DNA of 64,000 bases. Origin: Adineta vaga. Its lineage: Eukaryota > Animalia > Rotifera. The stretch covers positions 11,222,001 to 11,286,000 of the forward strand of contig CP075493.1 in assembly GCA_021613535.1 (NCBI GenBank). Direction: 5' to 3'. Position 1 is the stretch's first letter; the number at the start of each line of letters is the position of its first letter. Under the pieces are notes generated by a model. That model had not been told where the DNA came from and did not search any database. It worked only from the letters and a program-made list of their open reading frames with translations. Below, in pieces: positions 14,474 to 33,356 of this stretch. Both the position numbers and the translations under genes were made by a program.

Positions 14474-16173
14474 TCAGTCTTCATTCTTTTCCAATACAAA
14501 TTGCAATGTTACTGTTCCTTCAGGTATTTTATCATCGTACAATATTTGAAGGAGATCTACTATGGTTAAATCACTTCCAATTTCTGAGTTGTCATTATCA
14601 CCAATTAAAAATAATTTGTAAGAAGCAATATCTTGATTTTCGAGTCTTAATGATTCTAATGCGCACTGGATAATTTCTGAAACTTGCGTTTCTCCTTTAC
14701 AAGGTACAACTGTTGTTTGATTTCCATATGATATTGAACATTTAATTGAAGCCGTAGAAATTAATTGAAAGTCAAATTTGTTATCAGGTGCACTGAGATC
14801 TTCAAGAATAATTCCTGCACCAATTTCACAATTATCGTAATGTAAGCAACAGTAAGACTTCCTGATTTGAAATAGTTGACAGGCAATGTCTAAAATACGT
14901 TCCACACTCGTGGATAATGGACAATAGAACTGTAATGAAGAATCCTTATCTTCTGAATTCATAATTGTCACAGAAGATGGTAAAATCGTATCAATTAATT
15001 GAAAACATACAATAGGTGATGCAAAGCACGATAATGAAGTATTTTCTCCTGGAATAAAATCATTGTGATAAAGAAGTTGTTGTTTGCTATAATCAAATTC
15101 ATTTTCTTTTAGAATATCATTAATTATTGCTGATGTACGAAATCGTTGACGAACAATTTTATTTTCATCTTGGAATGCAATTGAAACAAGATAGGTTTCA
15201 TTTTCTTCTACCAAAATAAAATCTTGCGTATGTAAATGACTAATAGATTCATCAGTTCGAAAAATTCGTTGAGTATCATTTGATGTCAGATAAAGATTAC
15301 AATAATCGGGTATTTCTGTTTGTTGTAGAAGTTGTTTAACAGTCGTGTTATTGTTTGAAACAAGGATTTGCATTTCTTGTTGATTGTTATTCATGAAAAT
15401 ATTAATTGGAATGACTAATCGAAAATGAATTGTTTCATTATTATCCTCAGATCGATATGCATCAACCTGTTTACGATAACAATCTTCAGTAATTAATTGA
15501 TCATTTGAATATAAACAACAGTTATTGAGATTTAATTCCGCAAATGTTTGATTATTCAATAGATTCTGAATTGTAATAGATTTTAAAGTATGTATATGTT
15601 GAGTATTTTCTCCAAAGGTCAGATCAATATGAATGGTTTCATCGAGAGTGATACCATCAATGATTGTGTCAATATTGTCTGACAATGCAATTGATTGATC
15701 GTCATTGATAAGCGATTGCTTTTCTCGATTCCAAAAAGTACATGGTGATTCAATTTGTGGTAAAATAAATTTGCGCCATAATTCGATCTGTTCCCATTGA
15801 GCCTCTGGATGATACACAGTCGTTTTCTCTAATTCACCTTGATTGGATGTTAATGTTATTTCATAGAGAATCGTGTTCTCATCTTGCTCTTGAATATAAA
15901 TAATAATTGGAAGAGTTTTATGCATTTCATACAAATCTCCAATAATTCCATCCTGAATATATTGTCCGATTTCATCATAGAAACAATATCGATGATTCGG
16001 TGATGTTAATAGCAAATTTTGTTTTGTAATAATATCATTCATGAGAGATTGTAATGTACAATCAGGCATTGTCATATAGTTAAATCGCCGTTTATCAAAA
16101 TGAAATTCAAGAGAAATTAATGCTGATCGTTCCACAATGAAGTATTTGAGTGGTAATGGAGCTAGTGGTGGAT

Positions 16174-16205
<32 letters not shown>

Positions 16206-19200
16206 AAATCAAACAATATTCGACGATCATCAATGACAGCATAAGTATTTAAATCGTATTTTTTTTTATGAAATAGTTGTTTGAATTCTTCATGTAAGTT
16301 ATTACTGTTACATATTTTAGAATCACTTTTTCCATCGGGATGTGTAAAAACGAACTTTTGCGTTGGTTTTGTTGGTTTAACGTTTTGCATTTCTTGTTCA
16401 TTCTTTTCTAAAATGGATGTACACGAAGTAATTGGTATCGGATTTATTTGTATTTGAAATAGAGATGAATATTGTGGTGAATCTTTTTCATGAATCACGT
16501 TATAACTATCTATATTATCATCTTCGTCATCATCGGAATGATTTATGGAATATGTTGAATCCGTTCTATCAATTCCATGTAATTGACGATGATAACGATT
16601 TTTTGTAATTGTATCTTGTTCATTTGGATTTTCATCAAAATTTTCTTCCCAAAGTTGCGCTGTTTTTTCTTCAATATTTATCTTTTGTTCTTGTAAATTT
16701 GATTGAATTTGATTCAAATAAATGCTCAATGATAGATAATTTTCACATTTGATTTCTTCCGGTATTAATAGAAGTATTTCATTATCAATTCGAATATATT
16801 CCATCGTTAATTTCAACGATTCAGTTGATTGTTGTAGGAGAGTATCTTCAATGGATTTTAAATCTTGTAATAATTGGCTAATTTTTTGAATATTTAATTT
16901 GAGTGTATCGATATTTTCATCGTAATTAGTATTGATTAATTTAGATTCAAAAATCTGTTGAAGTTGAGTACTCAAATGCGTATCAATAGGAGTTCGAAGT
17001 AGATCAGGAATATTTACAAATGAATATTCAAATGTTCGTATCAATGTTCGATATACTTGTCCAATGTGATTTAAATGAGATAGTTTGAAATCGTGTACTT
17101 CGTATTGAATTAATTGTTGCATGAGATATTCATTTTCTTGAATTGATTGAATAAATTCATAGATACTTAATGATGATGCATCTGTTTGTTCTTCTTTGAT
17201 TATTGTTGCAATTTGTTTCAAAAGATTATAACCATGATAAAGTTTATCAATAAGCATATCATTTAAATGATTCCATTCATGTTCTAATGGTACAGAATAA
17301 TTTTCATCGAGATCAAATGATTTCTCATCATCATCATCATCATTCAACGTGACAAGAGAAATCAGTTTTCGTGGTTCATAAAATTGATATTTTTGAATGA
17401 TATGTTTATAGTTAATATGACATAGAAGTAGATAGGTTCGAATAATATATGATTGTATATACGTAAAATCAAAACTGAGTGGTGTATCTTCTTTAACAAA
17501 ATATTCATTTTCGAGAATCAAACTTGCAGAAGTTATTTTATTAATCCAAGAACAATCGGCATCGTTTAATGTAATTACACCAGTATTATAGAGTGCAACT
17601 TGAATGAGAGATATTTGATTTGGGAGAAGTTTTTTTATTAAAAATCGTAATATGGAACTGCTTTGATGATTGAGTCTATTGTTCTCGAATTCTTGTTCGA
17701 TTAAATCCAAGAAATTATTATGATAATCGACAAGGATACTATAGAAATATACGTAGACGAGAGGTGTTTACGAGAAAAAATATCTTTTTATACAATACCT
17801 GAGTATTCGCATAATAAGATCTTCGTCATCTGGATTTCCAATGGTAATCAAACGATGTACTGGTGTTTCGAGTGATATTTCTGTAAAATGTGTAGTTATA
17901 TCACATGGGCCCGGACGAATAAGACCATTGGTAAAAGTATGATAAGCATTGACTGCTTCAATTCCTTTCACAATGATATCCATATAATTTTGTGCTTCAT
18001 TTCGACGATGCCGACAAGTATATTTGTTCAAATGTTCTTTTGCTCGATCATGTATCTCTTTCAAGGTAATTTCCCAGACTTGTTCACGTTCAATTAATTG
18101 TGTATAGGTTTGATGAAGTAAAAGATAAAAATGACTTAATTCGTAAATATATTTTGTCATACTAAACAAATCTGTTGAATCTATGAATTGTTCTAAGATT
18201 CGCAAAGAGAGATGAGCAATTTTTGGATTGTGAATTTCTGTTTTGAAATGTGTTGTTTGAATCATCATTGGCGTTTGAGAAGTATATTGTTGCAAATTGA
18301 ATTGAATTTGTGATTGTAATTGTAATTGATCAACGTATCGTTTATATTCAGGTAACCGTTCATGAATGTTATAGAATACTTCATTCTGATAATTAAGTTC
18401 TGCTTGTACTTTAGAAGAGAAGTCTCTATAAAGAGGTTTTATCCAAGAATGTTCCTGTTGACCTGTGAGATATGCCATTCGTTCAAAACAACAATTGAGT
18501 AAGATACAAGCATCATCTTGATTTGAATTTATCGCTAAGAAATTGAAGACTGATAATAATCGAGCACGAACAAAATGGCACACTTTTGCGCGAAGACTAT
18601 CACCAGCCATGTGACAATCTGCCTGTCTATCTGCAATAGCGTTTGGTGATAGAATAGGACCATACAAATTTTGGACAGATTCTTCAAATAGTAACAAATG
18701 CCAAGCCTATATTAATGATAATTAAGGGTGGAAAACCAGATTATAGTGAAAATACAATAGCTTACCAGTGCACCAAACGTTGAAAAATAAACTGCATACA
18801 CGGCCGGAACTTTCAATTGATTGTCGTGATCATTGCCTATATATTGAGTAAGTTCACCAGTCACTGAAATGATACAACCACAGTCGTAATGAATAGCGAA
18901 TCTATCAACTGGAGCCTGATGTGTAGATCCGAAACCTAAGGATTAACGAAACATATTTACAAAAATTCTATTAAAACTAGAAATAACTGTGAATAAAAAC
19001 TTACCAAATGTACCTTCGATTGATAATGGTTCAAATGCAAATGTCCAGAGAAAACTTTCCTTTCCGCCTTTGATAATCATAGCCAATAAATTAACTAGAC
19101 AATGACGTATACATAATTCATCTGCTGCTTCACAATCTAGCCGAAACAAATGATTGAGATAATTAAAATCGATCGTATTAGTTCGTTGAGGATAACCAAT

Positions 19201-22200
19201 CATGTAGTGTTCAGGATCGAGGATACAACGAAAAATACGTAATTCTTCCGGAGAAAGTGCTAACGTTTGTTCAATAACATTCAGTAAAGCACGCAATGTG
19301 TGTAATTGATTGTTACAATAATAATTATAATAAATATTTAGTAGAAGAATAACTTTGATATCAGTGACTTGTAATTCATCAGCAGGTGTATTTAATTTAA
19401 GTTGAATCCAGTCAAGAAGAGGTCTCCATTGATTGATTGATTCATTATTGATACATGTAGCAATTACTTGAGTTAATTCATTATACGATTGATGAAGATG
19501 TGGAAAAATTGAAAATGTATGACTGTTTTGTGATAAAGTAAATTGTAATTGATGAGAAAATTGTAGATATTTATTCTGTTTTGGTATTTGTTTTAACTCA
19601 AGATGACGGCACAATATATTTGCCCATGTTTGAACTAATGTTTGAATCTTCTCACTTTTCAATAATTTTAAGAGAAAATGCCAAGACTGTTTTGATATAA
19701 TGGTAGATAGAAAGATTTGTAGATAAGGATTAAGTTGAGTTGTTGTATCGTCTAATAATAGATATTTATCGATTAAAACTTTTAAACAATTAAAAAATCC
19801 ATTTGTCTCATGATCGCTATCATTATCAGAAGCAATTTGACACAAAAATATTGCTACTAAACGTAAGAGAAAATATTCTTGAAATTCTTTAAATACTAAT
19901 TTGATTGCAGACGTTAGTTCTAGTCCTTTAACCTTTGGAGGTTTTAATGCCATCAATTCGTCAATGAGATTTTCATCGATTGCATTCTCGTTAGCATATC
20001 GATCGATGTGAAAGAAGAATAAATCAAGTAGGACTGAGCGATGATCATAACTTTGTTGTGCGACAACAGATGGATGTAACGGTACATGATAATCTTTTAA
20101 TCGATTTCTATTCGATATACATTGCATTACAATCGGTAAAAGATAATTGATACGATCCACAATGGATGAAACTGTGAGTTGTAATTGTTCAATTGTAAGA
20201 TCAATTAATTCGTCAAATAAAAGTTGTTTTGCTGGGATAGACCATTTACATTTCGAATCGCCGAGACAAATAAAAACACAATTGATATCATCCTGTGATT
20301 GTTGTTTGGATGTTTTCAATATTGATATTATCCATTGTTGAAAATCGATCATCAACGTACAATCTTCCGAATATTCATGAATAGTATTGATAATATCTGA
20401 TAATCTCTCCAGGTAAGGTGACTTATTATTATTACTTATTCTTGATGTATTCTCTTGAGGTAGATATTCTAATAGTCGAGAAATAAGCTGTACTGAATCC
20501 GATACAGTTTCATTGAGGAAAATAGCGTATGCTAATCGCATAAATTCAAGTTGATTCCGAATCTGGGCAAGTTTAGTACTACGTAGAAGTGTACCTGATG
20601 GATAATATTTGTTAATAAATGTGTACATATAAGACCATTGTTGAATTTGTTTTTCATCTCTATTTAAACATAGTTCCCGTAATCTTGTCCATAATAGATC
20701 AAATAAAATTCGAAACAATTCCTCACGTATATGAGATCGAGTAGAGTTTTTGTTTTGACATAATTCATTCGCATAAGAACGATTTGAATGAAAACTATTA
20801 ATGATTCGACAAGCTGAATACAATGATGAGATATCATTTTGTTCGTATTCAAATGTAGTGTAAATTTGAGCCAGATGGGACACAAGTTCAGCAGACATTT
20901 CTGATGCAGTATTGTCATCCTCATCTTTTAGTAATAACCAATCGGAAATAGCATTGATAGCATCGATAGATTGACTTTGATCATTATCAAATTTTCCTTC
21001 AACAGTCGTACAATAGATTCGTACTAAATCATTCGAATAATAGCTAAGAAGACTTTCAGTAATCATATCAGTCAAAACTTTATCTTTCTTCATGTGTTTC
21101 ATTAATTTGATGCAGAATTGCTCTTTCGAACATTCAACGATTTGATTGGCATCTGTTGAAGTTTTATTTTGGGTATTCATCAACATTTGTTTAATATTAT
21201 CAGCATGTGCTTTAATTCGTTGATGAAATAATTGATAAAGAGGAGTTTGTAGAATGAATGCATTTTGTATAATAAGTTGAAAAGTACTTTGAGATGGTGA
21301 TGGACATTTACCATTATTATCATCATCAAGTATAAATCCTGAGTAGTCAATTAGATGAAGAATCGATTTAATACTCATCTTACTATTGGATAATTTTGAT
21401 AATGTTTCTAAACCATAGTCATTAGCGAGAATTTTTAATATATTTGATACAAAATTTGTAAATGATGTTCGAATTTGAAGTTGTAAAGAATCTACTAGAC
21501 CCATCAAACGCTTTCCACATAGAATATCCTTTGAAATTTGATAGATTTTATTGTATGAAGTTTGTGATGAATTTTTCTTTCGAGACAATTGTTCATGATA
21601 AATATTAACAATATATTCTCGTACATGAGTTAAACGTTCCAAAATCTTTTTCAAACATTCAACACGTTGTTTCGTACTTGTTTGTTTATGATAGAATTCA
21701 TAAGCATATTCATCGCTGAACATGTCTTGTGCGGGTTGTGTATGAAATATTTGAGTTCTCGAACAGAAATCCCATAAACAATCATCAAAGAGAATATTTA
21801 AATCACAAATCACATCCTTTGGCGATTCTTTCAGTTGTTTTTTCGGTGATGAAACGATTTCCAACATTTTTTGTAAATGAAATGCACTACCAGGTGTACA
21901 CGTATCAAAGAAATAGAAATCCCAACCGTGCAAAAAGATCGTTGGGAAACCATTCTGATTATAAAGTTCTTGTGCTGGCATATGAACTAACATAATAAAG
22001 TATTTCTCTAGTCTTGAATTGTTTCTATTCTTATTGCAATCGAATTCGGTTTTGTCAACTAACTGTCGAACAAATGGCAAATGTTGTCGGTGTTGTCCCA
22101 TTTGACCATTGATTATAATAATCAAAACGTTTTTGTTTGATTCTTTTTCGAAAACGCGAAATTTCTCTTCCAATACAGCAGCATTTTCAATGATTGCCTA

Positions 22201-25200
22201 AGAAAAATAATTGTTAGCATAAAAGTTTCCAAATTCAATTAAACTTACAAGATTTAGAATTTCTATCATATCATCGATCTTTTCATTGAATCCGTTGTTC
22301 TTCTGTCTACTAAACAATTGATATTTGGATGCTTTATTTATTCCAACAACATAAGGTGATGTTCGTGTATATATCATTATTTTAGTAGTTGTAATAAAAT
22401 TCATTTCTATAGGTCTGTCAGCTGTTGTTCTATGCGTTGGACCATTGTCATCGGATGGCTTCTGTATAAGTTCTCGAACAAAGTTTTCTATATTGAAATG
22501 TTCTTGATATTGAAAGTAATTCTTAAATAATGCTTCAGCAAATTTATCTTCAAATGTCGGTAATTTGAATATGATTGATTCAGGGGAAGCGATTTGTATC
22601 AATTTCGATAAAATCAAACGTAAAAGACATAGTTGTTTATCTGTTTGATTTTGTTCAATGAAATGTTTCGTTTTGAAATTTAATTGAGTATAAATTCGAT
22701 GAATATTTGAAATGGAACATTGTCGATCGACATCAGTTTCAATCACTGATGATAGACATGAATAGAGCGTATTTTCATTCATTCCATATAGATATTGTTG
22801 ACCGAAATGTTTAATAAATGAGTGCATTTTACTTTCAACACTTTTCATTATATTTCGTTCTTCATTAGAAAGACGTTCGAATTGAATACGATAGAAATCA
22901 ACGATACTCAATGAATATTTCTGAAATCGACTCAAGAATGGTGCTGGTATTTCATTGAATTCATGTCGATTTACATGTACGATACATTGAAAATTATCGT
23001 GCACGACAACATCAACTGTTTTTGATCCAATGGCAACCTTCGAAAAGATTCTTCTTATATCACCCGTAGCCATGATTGAAAAATTCTGATTAAAAACATC
23101 ATAAAGTGAACCATGTATACGTCCTGTATTAACCATTAAGATTGTTCTTCCTGCTTCCATACATAATTTAATTGTCGATAACATTTCAACATTTTTCAAT
23201 TCATTATTCATATCATCGGAGAAATCTGACATTCGAAAAACTGTTGTTTGCTTAGGATCAATGATACCTGTTTGAAATAGCAGACGAACAGCACTTTCAT
23301 CATCTGATTCATCAATAATTAATTTATAACGACCATACAATCGTCGTTGTATTGATTCAAGTTTCATTGAATCTTGAAGAATAGTGATTACATCACGGTA
23401 GACATCATGTTGTTGTCGTCCTTTCGATAATATTTCAAAATCAGGACGTTTTTCTTGCACAGCTTTGAAAAATATGTCAACTACTTTGTCAAACTCTTTG
23501 CTACTAATTCCATTGAAATTATTTTCCAATGCATGCAATAAACTTTCCGGTCGAATTGTGTCGAGAACAACATCTTGCTGATCTGTTGAAGTTGATCGTA
23601 ATTCAAAACGGAGTTCACGTAACATATAAATAAAATCACGATCGTGAAATATCTTTGGAATATTGGGACATTGTAAAAGCCGACGATAGCCATGACACAA
23701 ACCAGTAATGATGTCAACTAAATGAGGATGTGTTGTTTCTTTATTTTTTAAACCAAGACAACCATAAGCTAAAACTTCTTGATCGTCTTCTGATGGAAGT
23801 GATCGATAGATACAAGTCATTCGATTGGCATTTGCAGCATCAAATGCTTTATTGGCGATTGCTACAAATGCTACTTGACATTCATCTAAATATTGATGTA
23901 ATACTTTTAATATCATTTTCTTTTCATCGGGCAAGGAAGCTTCATCCAAAAATACAACCTAAATATTGATTTATTCTAATTGAAAATGAGTATAAGAAAA
24001 GCTTACACATCGAGTGTTCATGCGATTCTGTTGATAATGCTGTTCACGTTTAATAGCTCGTTCGAATACGGATGCAATATCATTCGATGATGTGTATTTC
24101 GAACCAAGACAAAAGAATGGATCTACTGCTGGTAGTTTTTTACAGAACTCAGTTTTTGATAATTGTGGACCTTGAAGATTCTGTAATACGATTTGGAATG
24201 AAAGAGTTTTTGATTGTCCTACAAATTAAATCCAATAAGTTTACTATTAATTAAATCGTTCATTATTTAAGACTAACCTGGTGCACCAATAATGCACAAA
24301 GGCATTCGAGTGACAACACTTATAGTTATTGCAAAAATATGTTCGCGAATCTTCGATAGAGAAAAATTAATAAGGATAATCATGAACAAATATAGATGAG
24401 ATACATACGGCTTGGTTAATGGCAACACCTGTTGGAATGACAAAATTGGTGGTATTAACAAAATTTTCTAGTTCTTCTTGAATGATTCTTGCAAATCTTG
24501 ATAGACTTTTAGATAATAATTTAGCAAATTCTTCTCGTGAAGGTGTTTTTTGATCTCCTCGTTTCTTATTATCTTCATCTGTCGGTAGTCGAAAATAGTA
24601 GATTAATGCTAGTGATAACGCGATACATCGATCAAGATCAGGTTCTTCTTCTTCGTCTTTCATACTCTCATAGAAATATTCGATGAGTGTAAAACATCGT
24701 TGAATTTCTCTTTGTGATACTGTATTTTTACCTAATTTTTCTTCACAAAATGCTTGTGCAGCTAGAATTGCTTCGATTAGTTTCCCTTGTAAATATATGC
24801 GTAATTCTGGTTCCATTTCAAAACTTAAGTCAAATTTTGTTACTTTTTGTGTAATATAATCATGCAATGTTCTTGGTTCTAAAGAACCATACGATACTTT
24901 CAAATGTTCTAGTGATTCTGGTAGTTTATGAACGACATAATCTATACGATGAACAAGATTGTCTTGATTATCTTTGTCTAATGCTGGATTGATTGCAGCC
25001 GTAAAGAAAATGTTTTCTGGTATATTTTCACCTTGTAATGTTCTATCGGTAAATATTTCTTTAAAAAGTCCAAGACATGATGATGTATTTACTTCATCGA
25101 AAAAGACTACCAATTTAATATCTTTCCACTTATCTGCTAATTTTGATATTGGCGTGATAAACTCTTTAATATCTTGTTCAGTGACACCTGGATGAATCAG

Positions 25201-28200
25201 CATTCGATAGAATACTGATTTGACATGTGAATATGAAAGATATTCCTCTAGAATTTTTATAGATGTTCGTATGCTCAACGGACCATTTTCGATTAAATCG
25301 TCTAACTCAGAACTACCTTCGATTAAAGGTAAACTAGCCAACTCAGATGTTACATATTTACGCATCGCAATCAATAATCGTTTAGTAGTTGATGCGCAGT
25401 TTTTCTGCACTACGCTTAGAATAGTTCGCCAGATGAATACAAACATTTTAGAATCGTTTTTTGACTCTGAAAACGAAGTTTTAAATTGTGTTAGTAATTC
25501 GAGATTCATTCCATCTATAGATTGTTCTTCAGCTGTATCTTCAAGTAGATTTGAGAACTGATCGTTGAATCGGATTCGATTTTGTTCATTACAAAATGCA
25601 CGAAGACGACGAATTCCTAGGGATCGTGTAGGTGACGAAGGTCTACTACTTTGATCATCTTCATCTTCATCGCTAGTATACTCTCGATTGAGTTCTCGAA
25701 TTTTATTATCAGCTTCATCATCATCATCATCCTGACTATATTCGTGATCTTCGTCGATATCATCTTTCTGGGTATCTTCTTCATCAGTATTCATTAATTT
25801 TGGTTTCAAATGCTCAAGTATTTCATTCAAGAGATTTGGCTGTTTTTCAAGAATTTTCGTGAAGATGAATCCAGACATCCATACATTAGCGCGTTCCAGT
25901 ATTTGTTTGAGAAAAATAGTTTGATCGTAACTATGTTGAATATTTGCATTTACCAATAATGAATAGAATTTGAGTAAATATGTTTTTCCAATTCCTGTAT
26001 CACCTTCAATTATCAACGGGAGACTTGTTAATTTTCGTTCATGAATATGAAAAAGTTTATAAGCAAAGTTTTCTGTGAGAATAAATTTCATTTGATTCAT
26101 AATCTGTTCACATGTTTCATATTTAGTATTGACAAGCCAGGATAGACATTCGAGAAAACGATTTCTATTTAAGAACTCTACTCTTGTCAATGGATCCTTA
26201 TCTTTCCATAAAGTTTTTATTGTCGCGGGCACTTCATCCCAATTGTTATGCAACAAATGTAATGAAAAGTCAGGATCATAAACAAGATACACACGTGGAT
26301 AGTTATCATCATGAAAACTGATCTGACAAAGTGCCTTAGCTTCTTGTATCATTTGAGTCATGGCTGTTGAACCAAGATGTGGGGTGGTTTCGTTTAAAAT
26401 GTAAAAAGGATTAATAAAAAATCGAACACGACGATAGAGAAATTTTGTGAATGACACGTCATATATTTTATTTCGTTGTCCGTACGGTGAGCATTTGTCT
26501 ATGCAATCGTATATATGTTGACGGCATTCATTCTCGTCATGTAGCGTGTCAAACTCGTATGGCGAACAGAATCGTGTCGTTGGACGACGATCAATCGTAT
26601 TGTTTGAATATGCTTTAAGAAATCGCGCAACTAATTCTTCTTCTTCTCCAATATATAACTGATAATCTTCATTCGTGATTGTTTCTATTGATGATCGAGC
26701 AACTATAGAAACTATTGGTAATATATAATTCAAATTCTCCTCTAATGACGCATTGTATTTTGTTGAATATGGAATCTCAATGAAAAACGTCCAGCTAGTC
26801 ATATTTGGCAAAGCAAATGTTAGACCACTCGTTGGATCAATAAGTGAACCGCATACGAATAAGGAAAATAAGGTGCGATTCAAGTCATCAAATGGAGCAT
26901 AGTTGTATATATTAATGTAAACAGTTGCTTGACTACCGCGTATTGTTGAATCATATGAAATGAGTGAACTTATAAAGGATGATAAGCTTAATTTATCGTT
27001 GATACTAAAGCGTAATGTTTCTTCGGTCATGTACACTTTATTCACTCGATGTGTTTTACCTAAAAGTAGAAAACAAAATCAAGTAAAAGCGAAATAAGTT
27101 AATATCATTACCAGTTCCTTGTTTTCCACAAATGATGTACATTTCCGAAGGAAGTCGATCAGTTTTCTCGAACAGTTGTGTCAATTGCGTATGAGTTTTT
27201 GAGACATTTCGATAATCGGATGGTACATGAAAGAATTTCAATCCTCTTCGATATGTTGTTAATTCTCGAGAAAAATAATAGACGACTCCATGTGATTCTC
27301 TACAATTTGTTAGTAAATCTTGTTCATTCAATAGTACTTCACGAAGACGAAAATGCATTTTATCAATATCTAATATAACGAAAATCATATTGGCAAATGT
27401 TCGGATACGTGAAAAGAATAAATGAATATCATCTTCATTGACTGTTGAACACCATAAAATTTGAGATGCTGATGGTAATCGATCATTGAATAGATTTAAT
27501 AGAATACAAAACATTTCTAAATCAAACGTGCACTCAAATAGTTTCGTTTTCGATGTATCAGATTTTGGATTTAATGTGATAAGATACTGTTGACTTTCAT
27601 TACTTGTTACATTCTTATATATTGTTTGATTTGATTCCTTCAAAAATTCATTGAGAAAATAATCGAGATATTTAAGTGATCCATCGACACTAACATCATG
27701 TGTCAATGTATTATTATCGTATATCGATGATACTGAATCTTCAAATGGTTCACTTTCACTAATAGGTAATGAACGTAAATAATAGAGAAGAGAATATTGA
27801 GTACACTTGAACGCATTTGCATCACCATCGTCTTTTTCTTTCTCATATGAATATAACTTTTCAAATAGTTCAAGTTTAATTCGATAATTGGATTTTGAAT
27901 TTGTCAGTAAAATAATCATATTCATAATTTGTCGATTGGAGAACAATTTCAACAGGTAGCTTTTAGTTCTCCATTCTTGTAATCTATCAATCCAATCGTT
28001 GTATTCTCTTTCAAGTCGTTCCCAAGCATCTTTAAAACATTTTGTCCGAGATTGAATCATATCTTTTAGTTCTGTTTGATCTATGTCTTGATTTTCTTGC
28101 GATGTAAGTAATACCGGATTAATTGGATCTAGTCAAAGTAATTTAGAATATTAGTAGATGATAATTTTTTTAATATCTCTTACTTTTTGAACTATAAATT

Positions 28201-31200
28201 TTATAACGTTTACTCGTTAGTTGATAATTTGGATGACCGCTCATTTCTAATTTGATGAAAGTTGAATAAATATCGCCAATAAGTTTCAATAACTTCAATT
28301 GTTCTTCTAAGAGAATCTTCATATGAAACATGTTTTCTGGCAAATCTACATTGCAGAATATCAACTGACGTTTGTGATCTTCTATATCGGCCATGGATAG
28401 AGTCGTTTTTATTTTATCCACTTTGGATTCTTCTTCATCATCACTACTTTCATAGTTTCTTTCTTTTCTACCGATCATTTCTGTATTGGATGTTGTTGAT
28501 TGAGTTTTATCAATAAAATAATGGATTTCAAGCGAAGATTGTTCATGTAATAGGTGTCGTAGACGAATAGCAACTTGACCTGTTTTATATAAATGTGTCA
28601 TTACAACCAGAGCATTATCAAAAACAGTTGTTTCTTCGGCTGATAACCACATGCGAATAATTTGCGTATTGGTATTAGTATCTATAAAATAGGAAACTTA
28701 TATAGATTTATTTACAATGATTGACATATACATTTACCTTTCATATGACGAAGAGAATGTGTATCAAAATTGACTAAATTCACAATATGACCAACAAATT
28801 CTTGCAATGTATTAGCTTTCAGAACGAATGGTTCACATAATGTATAGGTAAGAATAAAAGAATTCAGCATGATATTATTGCGTTCCTGTAATTGAAATTG
28901 TATTGTTAAATTATCTCGTAGTTCTTGGAATTTTTGTCGACCTTTATCAGAATATAAATCGAACTCTTTCATTAATTCGATGATGTTTGGACATTCATTG
29001 GCTGTTTTAATCAAATCTAAATGTTTACTACTGATATTTTGAAATTCTTTTGTCAATAAACCATAATCTTGACAGATATTTTCTAATGAACAATCCTTTT
29101 TGCTGCTCAGTTGTTCGAGTTCATCGAGTTCATTATTCCCATCCGTGTTGGAAATAATATCAAACTTTTTAATACAATCAATAATCACCTTTATATGACT
29201 ATAATATTGAAAGATTTGTAATCGTTTACAGATTTGTTCAGTCTGCGGTTTGTTGATGGGCAGTGTCGTTGTTGTTGTTGGGTGTTGTCCATCATTTGTC
29301 AGCCGATCCGTTAATAAAGTTGTAACTTCATGTGAAATATGTATGCTTTCGCCACAGAAAATCTTTTCAAGTTCAACCATATCAGATAGCTTTATTTTCC
29401 CATCTAATAGTTGTTCAACGTATGGAAAAATGTTGTTATCAAGCTTGTCTGCAAAGTCAAATATTGAAATGCGTTCTTTTTGTGCACGATCATCGTTATA
29501 ACATAATTCGGTTATACCATCAAACAAATGGCAAACAGGTAGATCACTTTGTTTAACCTGATACCATACTGAACGTGGACTATACTTCTTATTGGTAATT
29601 TGGATTATTAATTGACCAGAATATAAGGTTTCAAATTCACCGTGGTAAACAAATTTATCAGTAGGAATATCTGCCTCACAAAATAACAGATCAGCATCAC
29701 CTGATGAATCTCCACGCTGAAACCAAATACTGGCATCACATGACCAATTTTCACTAGCCAGTGCCCAGTAAACATGTTGTCGACTGCTAACCTCACATCT
29801 TTTAAAAATAGTATCACCATCGTCCACCAAGAAAGAATTGTTAGCATTTAAACGCTTGAGATCTTGTATAAATCTTTTGGCATCTTGCACATCATATTTG
29901 GTACCTCTTTCAATCGTTTTGAAGGGTATTGAGCAATTTAATATGTAGCAAAGACGCTCCAAACATTTGATCGATTTCAACATTGTCATTGTTTTGTCTG
30001 CTATCTTTTTCATTTCTGATACTTGTGCTGTAACTTTGTTTCTATTACCATTTATAGCGAAATTCAGTTCAGCTGCGCCGTCAACATGAAATTTTCTCAA
30101 CCATTCTATAACATATTGGAAAATATCAAAGAATTGTCGAAACCATGCGATCCATTCATTCACTAGTTTGATAAAGTCATCAAACGATTGTACGCTGGGT
30201 TCCATCCTTAACTCAATAAAGTCTTTGGGTTGTTGATAGAATAAGATCGCAGAAATGTTGCTTGGTATATTGATAAATTTCTGCTCAAAATGGTCCCCCT
30301 GTGACAAGATTTCTCGGAAGTCAATTAGCGAAAATAGACATGGCGCAATCGATGTTTTGAATAAGTTTTGATACGTTAACGGTGAAGCTATGCAAAAATA
30401 TGAAATAAATTAAATATACTGAATCCAAGCATATGTTAAATTACCTCTTAGTAAAAGAATATTTCTCGTCGCTTGCTGAGCTTTTTGAATGAATTCATTC
30501 ACTTGATTTTCGTTAACTAGAGACGATTTATCATGATGAGCGGCGAGGATAAAATTAATGATGGTTTCTATATTTGGTGAGAATAATATAGAACTGATAT
30601 ATTTCATAATAATAGTCTCAAATACTGTATTAACAAAGACAATTGTTAAAGTATCATTGCGTAGATAAATATGGTGTCCAACGCGTTTCATCCAGTCAAC
30701 GATAGCGACAAGTATTTCATTTAGATCTTTAATACTGGTTTTTTGGATACTTAATTGTACAACTCTTGACCAAACATAACTCTTCCAAGGATGTTCACGA
30801 TGCGCATGACGTAAATCTTCATACTCTGATTTAATAATATAGGAATTTATCGAGATGATTGGTAATATATATTCAGTTAACCATGCGTCTTCAATTATTT
30901 CTGTTGGATTCTTATTAACACAAATATAATTATTGAAATCTTCTATTCTTCGGAAACAATGTAGAATTTTTTCTGATATTAATCCTTTATGGCCAAAATT
31001 AAATAGTAAACGATTGATAATGATTGAGCATGACAACTGTGAAAGATTACGTATCTGAGATAGTTTGAGAGCAGTATTGAACAACTGTAACCATTCTTGA
31101 TCTTCTATTTTGTAAGGATCCAGATCGGTAACAAACAGTTCTGAAACATAACCATCGAATACGGTTCCCAAAATTTTCATTCGATTCGCAAAGTTTTTAT

Positions 31201-32502
31201 CATTCAGCGTCGTGAGAGTATCGATGGCCATATTTATTATATTAAGGAATTCCTTGATGTTCAATAAGTCACTTTGTTTGATTAGTGTCGAAATCATCTG
31301 TGCTGACAACATATCGTTCAAGTTTAAGTCTTTCATTAGATTCAAAGAAACTTTCCAAAACGATTCGCCGGTCATATTTGCGGCGCATGCAGGCAGATAC
31401 CTCCCGAACAGTTCTTCCCATTCAGTAACATGGCGAAGTAAATCTTCAATGTGACCTCGATATTTGTAGTTCTTAATCATCCAATTTGATAAATGTGTTA
31501 AAAATTCACTGAAGAATGTCTTCATATTTAGATTTAAATCCTGAAGAAGAGAAATACAAGTAGAAAATGCTGGTATTTTTGGGTCTGCCCAAGGTTGTGT
31601 TTTTTCCATGAGACTAATAAATGTCGGAATATCAAGTGGAAAAGTTGTAAGGACCTGCTTATATTTAATAAATGCCGCAACAACTGATGCAAGTGGTAGA
31701 TCAATCGATTGTACCTGTGATAAGATGTTAAACCAAGAATAATCACGATGATCATCGCATTTCAGTGATGATTGCAACGATACTTTGTAGAGAACAAGAA
31801 ATATAACCAGATCCATATCGTTTCGAATAATTCTGATCGTCATTAAATGTTCTTGAATGTTTATTCTTCTTAAAATGTCTCGATCCTCTATAAGTACATT
31901 TGGCTTTTCACCATTTGTTCTTTCAAATACATATGCCAATTCTTCATAGAGAACAGTTCTTAATTCTTCTAATTCTTTACTTCGTTTTTCTTTTTTAGCG
32001 TGACTTACGTAGTTCAAGTATTCAACGATACGACGATAGATGTAGAAATATGAGTCGGTACGAGTCGAAAACTTCAATAAGTCGTCATCCGACTCAAAAC
32101 TTTTTATTGTACATTTCATAATATACCAAACATCGTTCGAAAACAGTTCATTATGCGGAGAACGATTGGATTCATCGAATGAGCCAATTATGTTCGCAAC
32201 TGAATTGAAAAATATAATGCCGTTGTCTTCATTGTTGAAAACATCGGCGATGGCAGCAATCGCTGGAGATACAACTTTACTTCTACTCCAACTCTCTGAA
32301 AGTACTTTGAATATTCTAGTCACGTAATTCATCAAAGGTATTTTGCTATGAGAAACAAAAAATCTAAAATAAAAATATGGGTGATATTAAACGTTTTTAA
32401 AAAGGTTTCCTCTAAGATACAAACACAAAAAGTTTATATTGGATATTTGACATTGAATACCTGAGTTTACCTGTAATATCCTGTATTCTCGTTTATATAC
32501 AT
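14474..32502 (-). CDS. Giant RNF213/mysterin-like multi-AAA+ protein (~5,800 aa, 13 exons) with GOLD-like domain, RZ remnant and C-terminal ubiquitin-like array
   Basis: The large minus-strand ORFs and small linking exons join in phase through GT-AG introns. RNF213-type motifs: GKQGTGKT (split by intron 27060-27110), FILTENFAYK, GDTGIGKT+FFDEVNT, VSQREIQRC, GAPGQSKT+VFLDEASL, DAANANRM, RDFIYMLR, MEAGRTILMVN, SLYDVFNQNF, PAPFLSRFQK. The start at 32502 is tentative. Confidence 0.85.
16175..16205 (+). repeat. (TAG)n microsatellite encoding poly-Thr in the RNF213-like gene
   Basis: About 10 tag units; reads TTTTTTTTTT on the minus strand. Confidence 0.9.
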
Positions 32503-33356
32503 CCATTACATAACAACTAGAAGAGATATTGTTACCATTATTTTTGTTATTGATATTTGTCTAGTAGATTTCTGACTTAACTTACCGATGTAATACTCAA
32601 ATTTTAGTCAGTTTTAAAACGAATACCAGTATATTTTTTCTCATTCAGTTATTCAGAACATAAAAAAACAACATTAGAGCTATGAATACAAGTAGAAAAA
32701 AAACGTAGTAAAATATACTGATAATGAGCTTCTCACGTCTCACTTATAAAAATGGGGAAAAAAAAAGAAATTTCTTTACATAAATCGATGCGTGCAGCAT
32801 AAGGAAACCAGTCAAAGACCGCAAAATAAACATAGAAAAGGAACGGTTTCACTTGAGCGAGAGAAAGGAAATTAAAGCATTAAAAACACTTGTGTCTCGA
32901 TAAAATATGTGTAATATTCTCGAGAAAGAAAGTCTGAAAATAAAGTTAAAAACAGATGACGTCTTTTATTTTCATATTCTTCAACTTGATTGAAGGATTA
33001 TTTTCCTTTTTTCGTTTATTTCATCACGAGTGGGTTTTTTCCCACTCTCAAGTTCATTTGATAAATTTGATTGATATGAATGTATCAAACATTTGTCTGA
33101 ACAATCAGTGAAAGAGAGAACTATGAACATGTTCTACTGTCGATTGTGTTGCTATTCAAAAAGAAAGCTTTTTTAACATCAGTGCACCATAATGAAAGAG
33201 AATCAGAATAAAACAAATAGTGTACATAGAAACTATGAAAGAATTCATAGTTACACATTTTTATTGATGTTTCAAATGAGAAAAAAAGAAGAAATCAAAG
33301 TCTATCGGAGAGGATTGAAATTATGTGCTTTTATGATATACTGAAAGAAGAACAGA

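Follow-up and report, generated by a model that had tools for sequence, protein, structure and literature searches.

A giant gene of the rotifer Adineta vaga, probably from an old sister family of RNF213 without RING or RZ finger

What kind of machine does the giant gene on the minus strand of C1:11,222,001-11,286,000 of the Adineta vaga genome (100.8 Mb in six contigs) encode, and how is it related to the ubiquitin ligase (E3) RNF213? The 64,000 nucleotides (nt) of this stretch are called the window below, and positions are given in it. An earlier note had taken the gene for an RNF213 remade within rotifers, with a conserved AAA core, a lost RING and new terminal modules. The evidence presented here makes it probable that the locus is a single gene, intact and weakly expressed, which encodes about 5,750 amino acids, is a member of an old and unnamed family that is sister to RNF213, and works by the mechanism proposed below.

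The window is AT-rich (about 31% G+C). From 32560 down to 14477, 13 long open frames (57 to 1,097 codons each) succeed one another head to tail, and frames this long cannot have arisen by chance in DNA of such composition. Every adjacent pair can be joined in frame through a GT..AG intron of 48-69 nt (about 55 nt), with typical donors (GTAAGT or GTAAAT) and a pyrimidine-rich TAG acceptor. Close protein matches are labelled as A. vaga itself and other bdelloid rotifers. The 13 exons announced in the earlier note for a protein of about 5,800 amino acids do add up, by computed lengths, to 17,349 nt, which is divisible by three and gives 5,783 codons, but the first of them (32421-32506) is doubtful. 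Because the A. ricciae protein has its start where exon 2 contains an ATG, at 32332, a model of 12 exons and 5,744 amino acids is possible, and the coding exons may number 12. The frames and introns thus join to 5,744-5,783 amino acids, with exon 1 as the part that is not supported. The gene and those of its exons that are referred to below are as follows.

14474-32506, minus strand: whole gene, from the ATG at 32506 (13 exons) or 32332 (12 exons) to the stop at 14474-14476; open frames and GT-AG introns, collinear with full-length rotifer proteins
32421-32506, minus strand: putative coding exon 1; possible splice 32420/32364 only, homologues starting near the ATG at 32332, without RNA support
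30445-32363, minus strand: exon 2, N-terminal region with no recognised domain; no Pfam match, phmmer matches to bdelloid homologues only
28738-30387, minus strand: exon 3, containing a GOLD fold and, from about residue 390, a part common to protist members, where the conserved arm begins; AlphaFold2, phmmer and a spliced contig of sequencing run X4
28184-28681, minus strand: exon 4; open frame, in-frame intron and collinearity
27112-28128, minus strand: exon 5, ending within the upstream-most P-loop; motif and splice
24409-27059, minus strand: exon 6, from AAA2 to AAA3; phmmer against PDB, RNF213 only, E 1e-8
22249-23958, minus strand: exon 9, from the Walker B motif of AAA4 (VVFLDEAS, 23935-23958) through AAA5; phmmer against PDB, RNF213 only, E 6e-14
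19005-22197, minus strand: exon 10, covering the end of the AAA region, the hinge and the E3 shell; hhalign collinearity
18766-18935, minus strand: exon 11, remnant of the RZ position; hhalign placement with flank confidence 8-9
16700-18706, minus strand: exon 12 plus the opening third of exon 13, a homologue of the last part of the E3 module of RNF213 and of its C-terminal domain (CTD), which binds the ubiquitin-conjugating enzyme (E2); hhalign confidence 5-9

The AAA core is what ties this gene to RNF213. Searches were run exon by exon, and the full-length paralogue P0149 (A. vaga I4U23_010595), with which the exons of the window are collinear, served as a proxy for coordinates. When all PDB sequences were searched with phmmer, exon 6 matched RNF213 entries only (E 1e-8), with both Walker motifs of AAA3 aligned, and exon 9 matched RNF213 only (E 6e-14 over 395 amino acids, from the Walker B motif of AAA4 onward). 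No dynein or midasin matched these two exons up to E 10, and no PDB sequence matched exons 10, 12 and 13. Pfam gave nothing significant on any exon. The nucleotide-binding motifs, in which a slash marks an intron, are placed as follows, the first P-loop being taken as that of AAA2 because it precedes AAA3.

27052-27127, minus strand: first P-loop, GKQGTG/KT, taken as AAA2; split by the phase-1 intron 27060-27111
25981-26004, minus strand: Walker A of AAA3, GDTGIGKT; motif, aligned to RNF213
25111-25980, minus strand: spacer of about 290 amino acids between Walker A and B of AAA3, partly acidic and of low complexity; hhalign confidence 0 here
25087-25110, minus strand: Walker B of AAA3, VVFFDEVN; motif, aligned to RNF213
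24205-24287, minus strand: Walker A of AAA4, GAPG/QSKT, in exons 7 and 8; split by the phase-1 intron 24219-24277

The motifs GDTGIGKT, VVFFDEVN and VVFLDEAS each lie within a single exon. Two of the three P-loops are cut at the same spot, by a phase-1 intron in the Gly codon that precedes the Lys (GxxGxG/K[ST]). Since the P-loop of AAA2 and both Walker motifs of AAA3 and AAA4 are intact, the protein should still bind and hydrolyse ATP and act as a switch of the RNF213 type, as far as can be judged from its sequence. In mouse RNF213, about 40 amino acids separate Walker A from Walker B in AAA3, whereas about 290 do so in the window gene, and runs rich in Asp and Glu lie in this spacer. The spacer of the malawimonad Gefionella okellyi, a member of the same family (see below), is shorter, so that a part of the insertion is family-wide.

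The resemblance to RNF213 extends far beyond the AAA modules. Profiles of 17 family proteins and 13 RNF213-clade proteins (tiers 1 and 2 of the search described below) were aligned with hhalign, which placed residues 232-4913 of P0149 on residues 590-5217 of the 5,220 of Xenopus RNF213 (probability 100, E 4e-153). Confidence is 5-8 in the AAA ring and about 5-9 in the CTD; within AAA3 there is a stretch where it falls to 0, and it is about 1 at the place of the vertebrate RING. The family thus shares with RNF213 (mysterin; PDB 6tax, 8s24, 9i1i) the N-terminal arm, six AAA modules with AAA3 and AAA4 of the active type, hinge, E3 shell and CTD, all in the same order. About 780 residues, including eight ubiquitin-like (Ubl) domains, extend past the C-terminus of RNF213.

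In mammalian RNF213, the RZ finger is catalytic, while the RING was reported to be dispensable for autoubiquitination and for the ubiquitylation of lipopolysaccharide (PMC12075652). Neither is present as such in the window gene. No exon, nor the whole protein, contains a RING pattern or even a CxxC, no RING was matched by Pfam, and none is seen where the RING would align, at about residues 585-600 of exon 10. The RZ finger (PF20173) is not matched even at E 10. As positive controls, the same Pfam test found RING and RZ in a snake RNF213 and RZ alone in the proteins of Xenopus, Mytilus and Oopsacas; it also detected an RZ finger in two other open reading frames of the A. vaga genome. Mollusc and sponge proteins of the RNF213 clade that carry an RZ finger have no RING by Pfam. 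Two bivalve proteins of this clade (P0192 and P0194) show, at the position of the vertebrate RING, a RING-like spacing of Cys and His that Pfam does not score. Absence of RING from invertebrate RNF213 when judged by Pfam alone may therefore be an undercount.

What is left at the position of the RZ finger is a short motif.

18874-18891, minus strand: conserved HYDCGC motif, whose first Cys is aligned to C4505, a zinc ligand in RNF213

In human RNF213, zinc is bound by C4505, H4509, C4525 and C4528, C4516 (C4462 in mouse) serves as nucleophile and H4537 as general base, and the E2 docks on the CTD (PMC11549300, PMC12075652). The family motif HYDC/GC (here the slash does not mark an intron) aligns with the WYxC of the RZ finger; the next 23 residues, those of the zinc loop, are missing, and the flanks are aligned by hhalign with confidence 8-9. 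The equivalent of C4505 is thus the sole survivor, three of the four zinc ligands, including C4525 and C4528, being absent. The nucleophile is either deleted or, in an alternative register (G-E-L against G-E-C), replaced by Leu. The surviving Cys is found in all of the 17 aligned family members; in a motif alignment it is replaced by Ser in 2 of 22, and an Asp usually precedes it. The retained Cys and His were also considered as the catalytic pair of RNF213, a possibility that was rejected, the Cys aligning with a zinc ligand and the His downstream of the D-C motif not being conserved among the rotifer paralogues.

The distribution of related proteins indicates that this state is not peculiar to rotifers. 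A profile made from exon 10 and its counterparts in two paralogues was searched against 1.84 billion representative sequences and retrieved many rotifer fragments as well as several full-length giants, the best named ones being those of G. okellyi (E 1e-63) and of a picozoan. The Gefionella protein has three P-loops and neither RING nor RZ by Pfam. When its AAA region was used as a query, the matches fell into two tiers. The first (E 1e-192 to 1e-58) comprises Gefionella, Picozoa, bdelloids, the sponges Oscarella, Sycon and Amphimedon, the Amoebozoa Polysphondylium and Pelomyxa and the stramenopile Pinguiococcus; for none of the members listed does the precomputed Pfam listing give a RING or an RZ finger. 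The second (E 1e-33 and weaker) is RNF213 proper, mostly with PF20173, to which a RING is added in vertebrates.

In the same way, a tree built from the AAA4-AAA5 region by a quick IQ-TREE search without bootstrap separates two clades, each with a Shimodaira-Hasegawa-like approximate likelihood ratio test (SH-aLRT) support of 100. The window gene is found in the RZ-less clade, outside the RNF213 clade, within a bdelloid clade of 11 rows (SH-aLRT 100) that stands beside Gefionella and Picozoa. The RZ-bearing clade includes the protist Diphylleia, and the split is therefore older than animals. This phylogenetic evidence assigns the window gene to an old sister family of RNF213 and does not make it an RNF213 peculiar to rotifers from which the RING was lost. 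Other members of its clade are Gefionella okellyi EP00698_P000161, Polysphondylium CYY_006083, a protein of Pelomyxa labelled 'AAA+ ATPase' and I4U23_010595, besides those of Picozoa and of the three sponges. What the clade has in common is the E3-shell region (E 1e-63 for Gefionella), a conserved D-C motif in the place of the RZ finger and, by precomputed Pfam, the absence of RING and RZ. No paper describing an RZ-less family was found in literature searches, and the GenBank gene models of the family are labelled hypothetical or unnamed.

The two ends of the protein differ from those of the members outside bdelloids. According to phmmer and hhalign, the first 1,000 residues or so and the C-terminal tail match bdelloid proteins only, Didymodactylos included; precomputed Pfam matches place SAM domains at the ends of the Oscarella protein and FN3 at those of the Sycon protein. 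An Atlas feature search with exon 2 returned only weak matches of mixed families. The following two features were identified by structure prediction.

29543-29923, minus strand: GOLD-fold beta-sandwich, residues 155-281 of the exon-3 model; AlphaFold2 and Foldseek
14486-16360, minus strand: eight tandem ubiquitin-like (beta-grasp) domains; AlphaFold2 and Foldseek, protein ending in ...LEKNED

Exon 3 was modelled by AlphaFold2 from 31 sequences with a mean predicted local distance difference test (pLDDT) of 82.8, rising to about 90 over residues 155-281. The best Foldseek match of this sandwich is the GOLD domain of ACBD3 (6hlv, E 5e-7, template modelling (TM) score 0.72-0.76), and those of SEC14L and p24 are matched too, down to E 7e-4. 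It has the same beta-sandwich fold as the GOLD domains of ACBD3, SEC14-like and p24/TMED proteins (TM 0.68-0.76) but, unlike these, it sits in the helical arm of a cytosolic AAA giant and has no Pfam match to GOLD at the sequence level. The arm of human RNF213 also contains a sandwich, which is a CBM20 (residues 378-515) and occupies another position (PMC11549300). The resemblance between the two is one of role, not of descent.

The last 635 residues, modelled from 13 sequences with a mean pLDDT of 83.3, form eight consecutive beta-beta-alpha-beta-beta-beta units. Foldseek matched them to linear tetra-ubiquitin (E 9.5e-15), to the HUBL region of USP7 (E 8.5e-13) and to ISG15, FAT10 and OASL; the last unit also gave weak, sub-threshold Pfam matches (RA, TUG-UBL1, Par3 and RBD, at E 10). 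Like USP7 HUBL, linear polyubiquitin, ISG15 and FAT10, which are its best structural matches, the tail is made of tandem beta-grasp domains joined by short linkers. However, it has eight units, about 10% identity to these proteins and no terminal Gly-Gly. There is no Gly-Gly anywhere in its 635 residues, and its units are therefore built-in domains, not conjugatable modifiers. Furthermore, USP7 HUBL is part of a deubiquitinase, whereas the array of the window gene is joined to an AAA/E3-like giant.

Only the GOLD arm and the Ubl tail look specific to bdelloids, at least as far as sequence searches reach. The Ubl tail may nevertheless be older than it looks: non-rotifer members have long tails of their own, so that the array may predate what these searches show. 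Comparing rotifer Ubl tails with the long protist and sponge tails by hhalign gave no convincing match (best probability 24%), Pfam found nothing on the ends of four non-rotifer members and an Atlas feature search of the Gefionella tail yielded nothing usable. Most of the structural claims of the earlier note thus hold: the AAA motifs are all present in the order of RNF213 (GKQGTGKT; GDTGIGKT and FFDEVN; GAPGQSKT and LDEAS), the core is RNF213-like and not that of a midasin or dynein, the region after the AAA modules is collinear with RNF213 down to its C-terminus, the RING is missing, a remnant marks the RZ position, and both the GOLD domain in exon 3 and the poly-Ubl tail were recovered by structure prediction.

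What is observed of the protein is its architecture, its intact motifs for nucleotide binding, the lack of RING and RZ, and the two folds; whatever follows on its function is inference. The GOLD arm would bring the machine to a membrane, a lipid or a protein target, and ATP binding in the AAA ring would gate the C-terminal module. The output would not be ubiquitin transfer of the RZ type. It could take either of two forms: the nearly invariant Cys of the D-C motif would be a zinc-free transthiolation site, or the built-in Ubl array would itself be the signal, read by ubiquitin-binding partners. That D-C is almost invariant at what was once the active site speaks for a cysteine site without zinc. 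A scaffold displaying an Ubl array of its own is favoured by the lack of the nucleophile, by E2 contacts that are not recognisable in a poorly aligned stretch, and by the polyubiquitin-like tail.

The latter argument leads to a rival explanation, namely that the protein is a pseudo-ligase without catalysis, in which E3 shell and CTD are only structural, and which works as an ATP-driven scaffold or coat-former displaying its Ubl array. This is possible, although doubtful. It accounts for the lack of an equivalent of C4516 and of a set of zinc ligands, for the E2-contact residues that cannot be recognised, and for a tail resembling linear polyubiquitin and USP7 HUBL. However, the D-C motif is nearly invariant from rotifers to malawimonads, which suggests a chemical and not a structural role, and shell and CTD have remained detectably conserved over very long times. 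A bolder and rather unlikely proposal is that the tail of eight Ubl domains replaces, in built-in form, the coat of ubiquitin which RNF213 of mammals makes by catalysis. Having assembled cooperatively, driven by ATP, on a target recognised by GOLD, the protein would mark this target with its own array and recruit ubiquitin-binding autophagy or degradation factors, with neither an E2 nor a catalytic Cys being required.

Another question is how bdelloids came to have genes of this family. They could have received them by horizontal transfer from a protist instead of inheriting them from an animal ancestor. The scores of the exon encoding the E3 shell would fit such an origin, its best non-rotifer matches being Gefionella (159 bits) and Picozoa (151 bits), with the sole named sponge match at 26 bits, as would the neighbourhood of these two lineages to the bdelloid clade in the tree and the restriction of the family, among named animals, to sponges and bdelloids. 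Yet the join to Gefionella and Picozoa is weakly supported (86, drawn open), the sponge Oscarella pearsei scores like Gefionella in the AAA exons (296 versus 221 bits; 287 versus 315 bits), and the genes have introns and a composition typical of their host. Transfer is thus improbable, and vertical descent with wide loss is favoured over it, though not strongly.

It is very improbable, in turn, that the gene is what the earlier note proposed, an RNF213 orthologue re-engineered in the rotifer lineage by loss of the RING and most of the RZ finger and gain of new ends. The collinearity with RNF213 and the restriction of the GOLD arm and Ubl tail to bdelloids in sequence searches are what this proposal would predict. 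However, the absence of RING and RZ is common to the proteins of Gefionella, Picozoa, Amoebozoa, Pinguiococcus and sponges, all grouped with the rotifer genes in a single clade outside RNF213; the RZ-bearing clade reaches Diphylleia, so that the split predates animals; and the same genome has kept genes of the RZ type. Neither 'RING lost' nor lineage-specific re-engineering can be upheld against a separate clade with protist and sponge proteins. As for the claim that the architecture had not been described, it stands in that no paper on the family was found.

Evidence from transcripts is sparse. None of the public runs on record as RNA holds the stretch. In run X4, low-depth contigs cover exons 2-5, and one spliced contig exactly skips the intron 30388-30444, between exons 2 and 3. 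Contigs of runs X1 and X3 cross introns unspliced and are DNA-like; those of X1 over positions 27001-33000 show about 1% mismatches to the window, mostly transitions, and probably come from another haplotype or strain of the same species. The remaining 11 junctions are based on the continuity of the frame and on full-length gene models, collinear with this one, from paralogues and orthologues (I4U23_010595 of A. vaga, 5,692 amino acids; Rotaria, 5,789; A. ricciae, 5,622). Full-length models from five further bdelloid species show the same order of parts, as do intron-free Gefionella transcripts. That the stretch holds several separate genes or a decayed pseudogene with no single coding unit is hardly credible, because, even if just one of the 12 introns was seen spliced, RNA-like contigs are few and stop-containing fragments exist elsewhere in the genome, the frame remains unbroken for about 17.3 kb over 12-13 exons in AT-rich DNA, two P-loops are complete only after splicing, and the order of parts is preserved in these bdelloids and in Gefionella.

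Several points nevertheless weigh against reading the locus as one intact gene of an RZ-less sister family working by the proposed mechanism. Eleven of the 12 introns and the start codon are without RNA support, transcript data being limited to the few low-depth contigs of a single run. The local alignment across the RZ motif has a low confidence (about 3), so that the nucleophile may be either deleted or replaced by Leu. The stretch that contacts the E2 (F5093, W5097, D5101, Y5106 and E5108 in mouse) is aligned with a confidence of 1-2 only; in it, F5093 and W5097 are not recognisably kept and the RZ-less family has no conserved Trp. Lastly, non-rotifer members also carry 750-1,075 residues after the CTD, so that a greater age of the Ubl tail is possible.

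The A. vaga genome contains three intact RZ-less copies, on C1, C2 and C3, together with stop-containing fragments. The two full-length paralogues of the window gene lie at C2:15.317-15.327 Mb, this copy being GenBank I4U23_010595 (P0149), and at C3:12.403-12.414 Mb (L002, L003, L007-L010, L017-L019). Both have one extra intron compared with the window gene, within the exon-10 region, and they are identical to it at 65-66% of positions over exon 9, 45-57% over exon 10 and 33-45% over exon 13. Evolution is fastest at the ends: paralogues are 31-35% identical over exons 2 and 13, compared with 62-82% over exons 8-9, the exons of AAA4. Fast-evolving ends and decayed copies fit a gene family of the conflict or immune type, though they are no proof of it. 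The role in pathogen sensing that the earlier note suggested is conjectural.

Other relatives are scattered over the genome. The two open reading frames in which an RZ finger was detected are of RNF213 type: one, of 2,184 amino acids, lies about 55 kb from the window (C1:11158001-11168000; L025 3400-9951, minus strand) and the other, of 2,066 amino acids, on C6 (C6:6298001-6308000; L026 3134-9331, minus strand); their PF20173 scores are 26.2 and 26 bits for a cut-off of 27. Short matches to the start of exon 10, each with several in-frame stops, are found at C2:254513-255507, C5:1758828-1759529 and C3:16374329-16375139 (L011-L015) and resemble the decayed remains of additional family members. 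The poly-Ubl tail is also present in copies away from any detected AAA core, at C5:817183-819144 (L020 1342-3474, plus strand) and C3:3688949-3690874 (L021, L023). The C5 copy (L020) is an open frame of 711 amino acids with the full Ubl array, and the C3 copy (L021) carries the end of the CTD and the first Ubl units and then breaks off. These isolated copies may be stand-alone genes or remnants.

To our knowledge, RNF213 has been studied almost only in mammals. The window gene points to an unstudied half of the RNF213 superfamily, a second branch that is at least as widespread in eukaryotes and has kept the motor, the shell and the CTD, but in which no zinc finger is seen. It is thus less specific to one lineage than the earlier note held. 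It raises the question of what the ancestral output of RNF213-type machines was, and whether the scaffold can work with a zinc-free cysteine loop or without any catalysis. The bdelloid version, which combines a GOLD arm with a built-in poly-Ubl tail, would be a compact natural test case for both questions.

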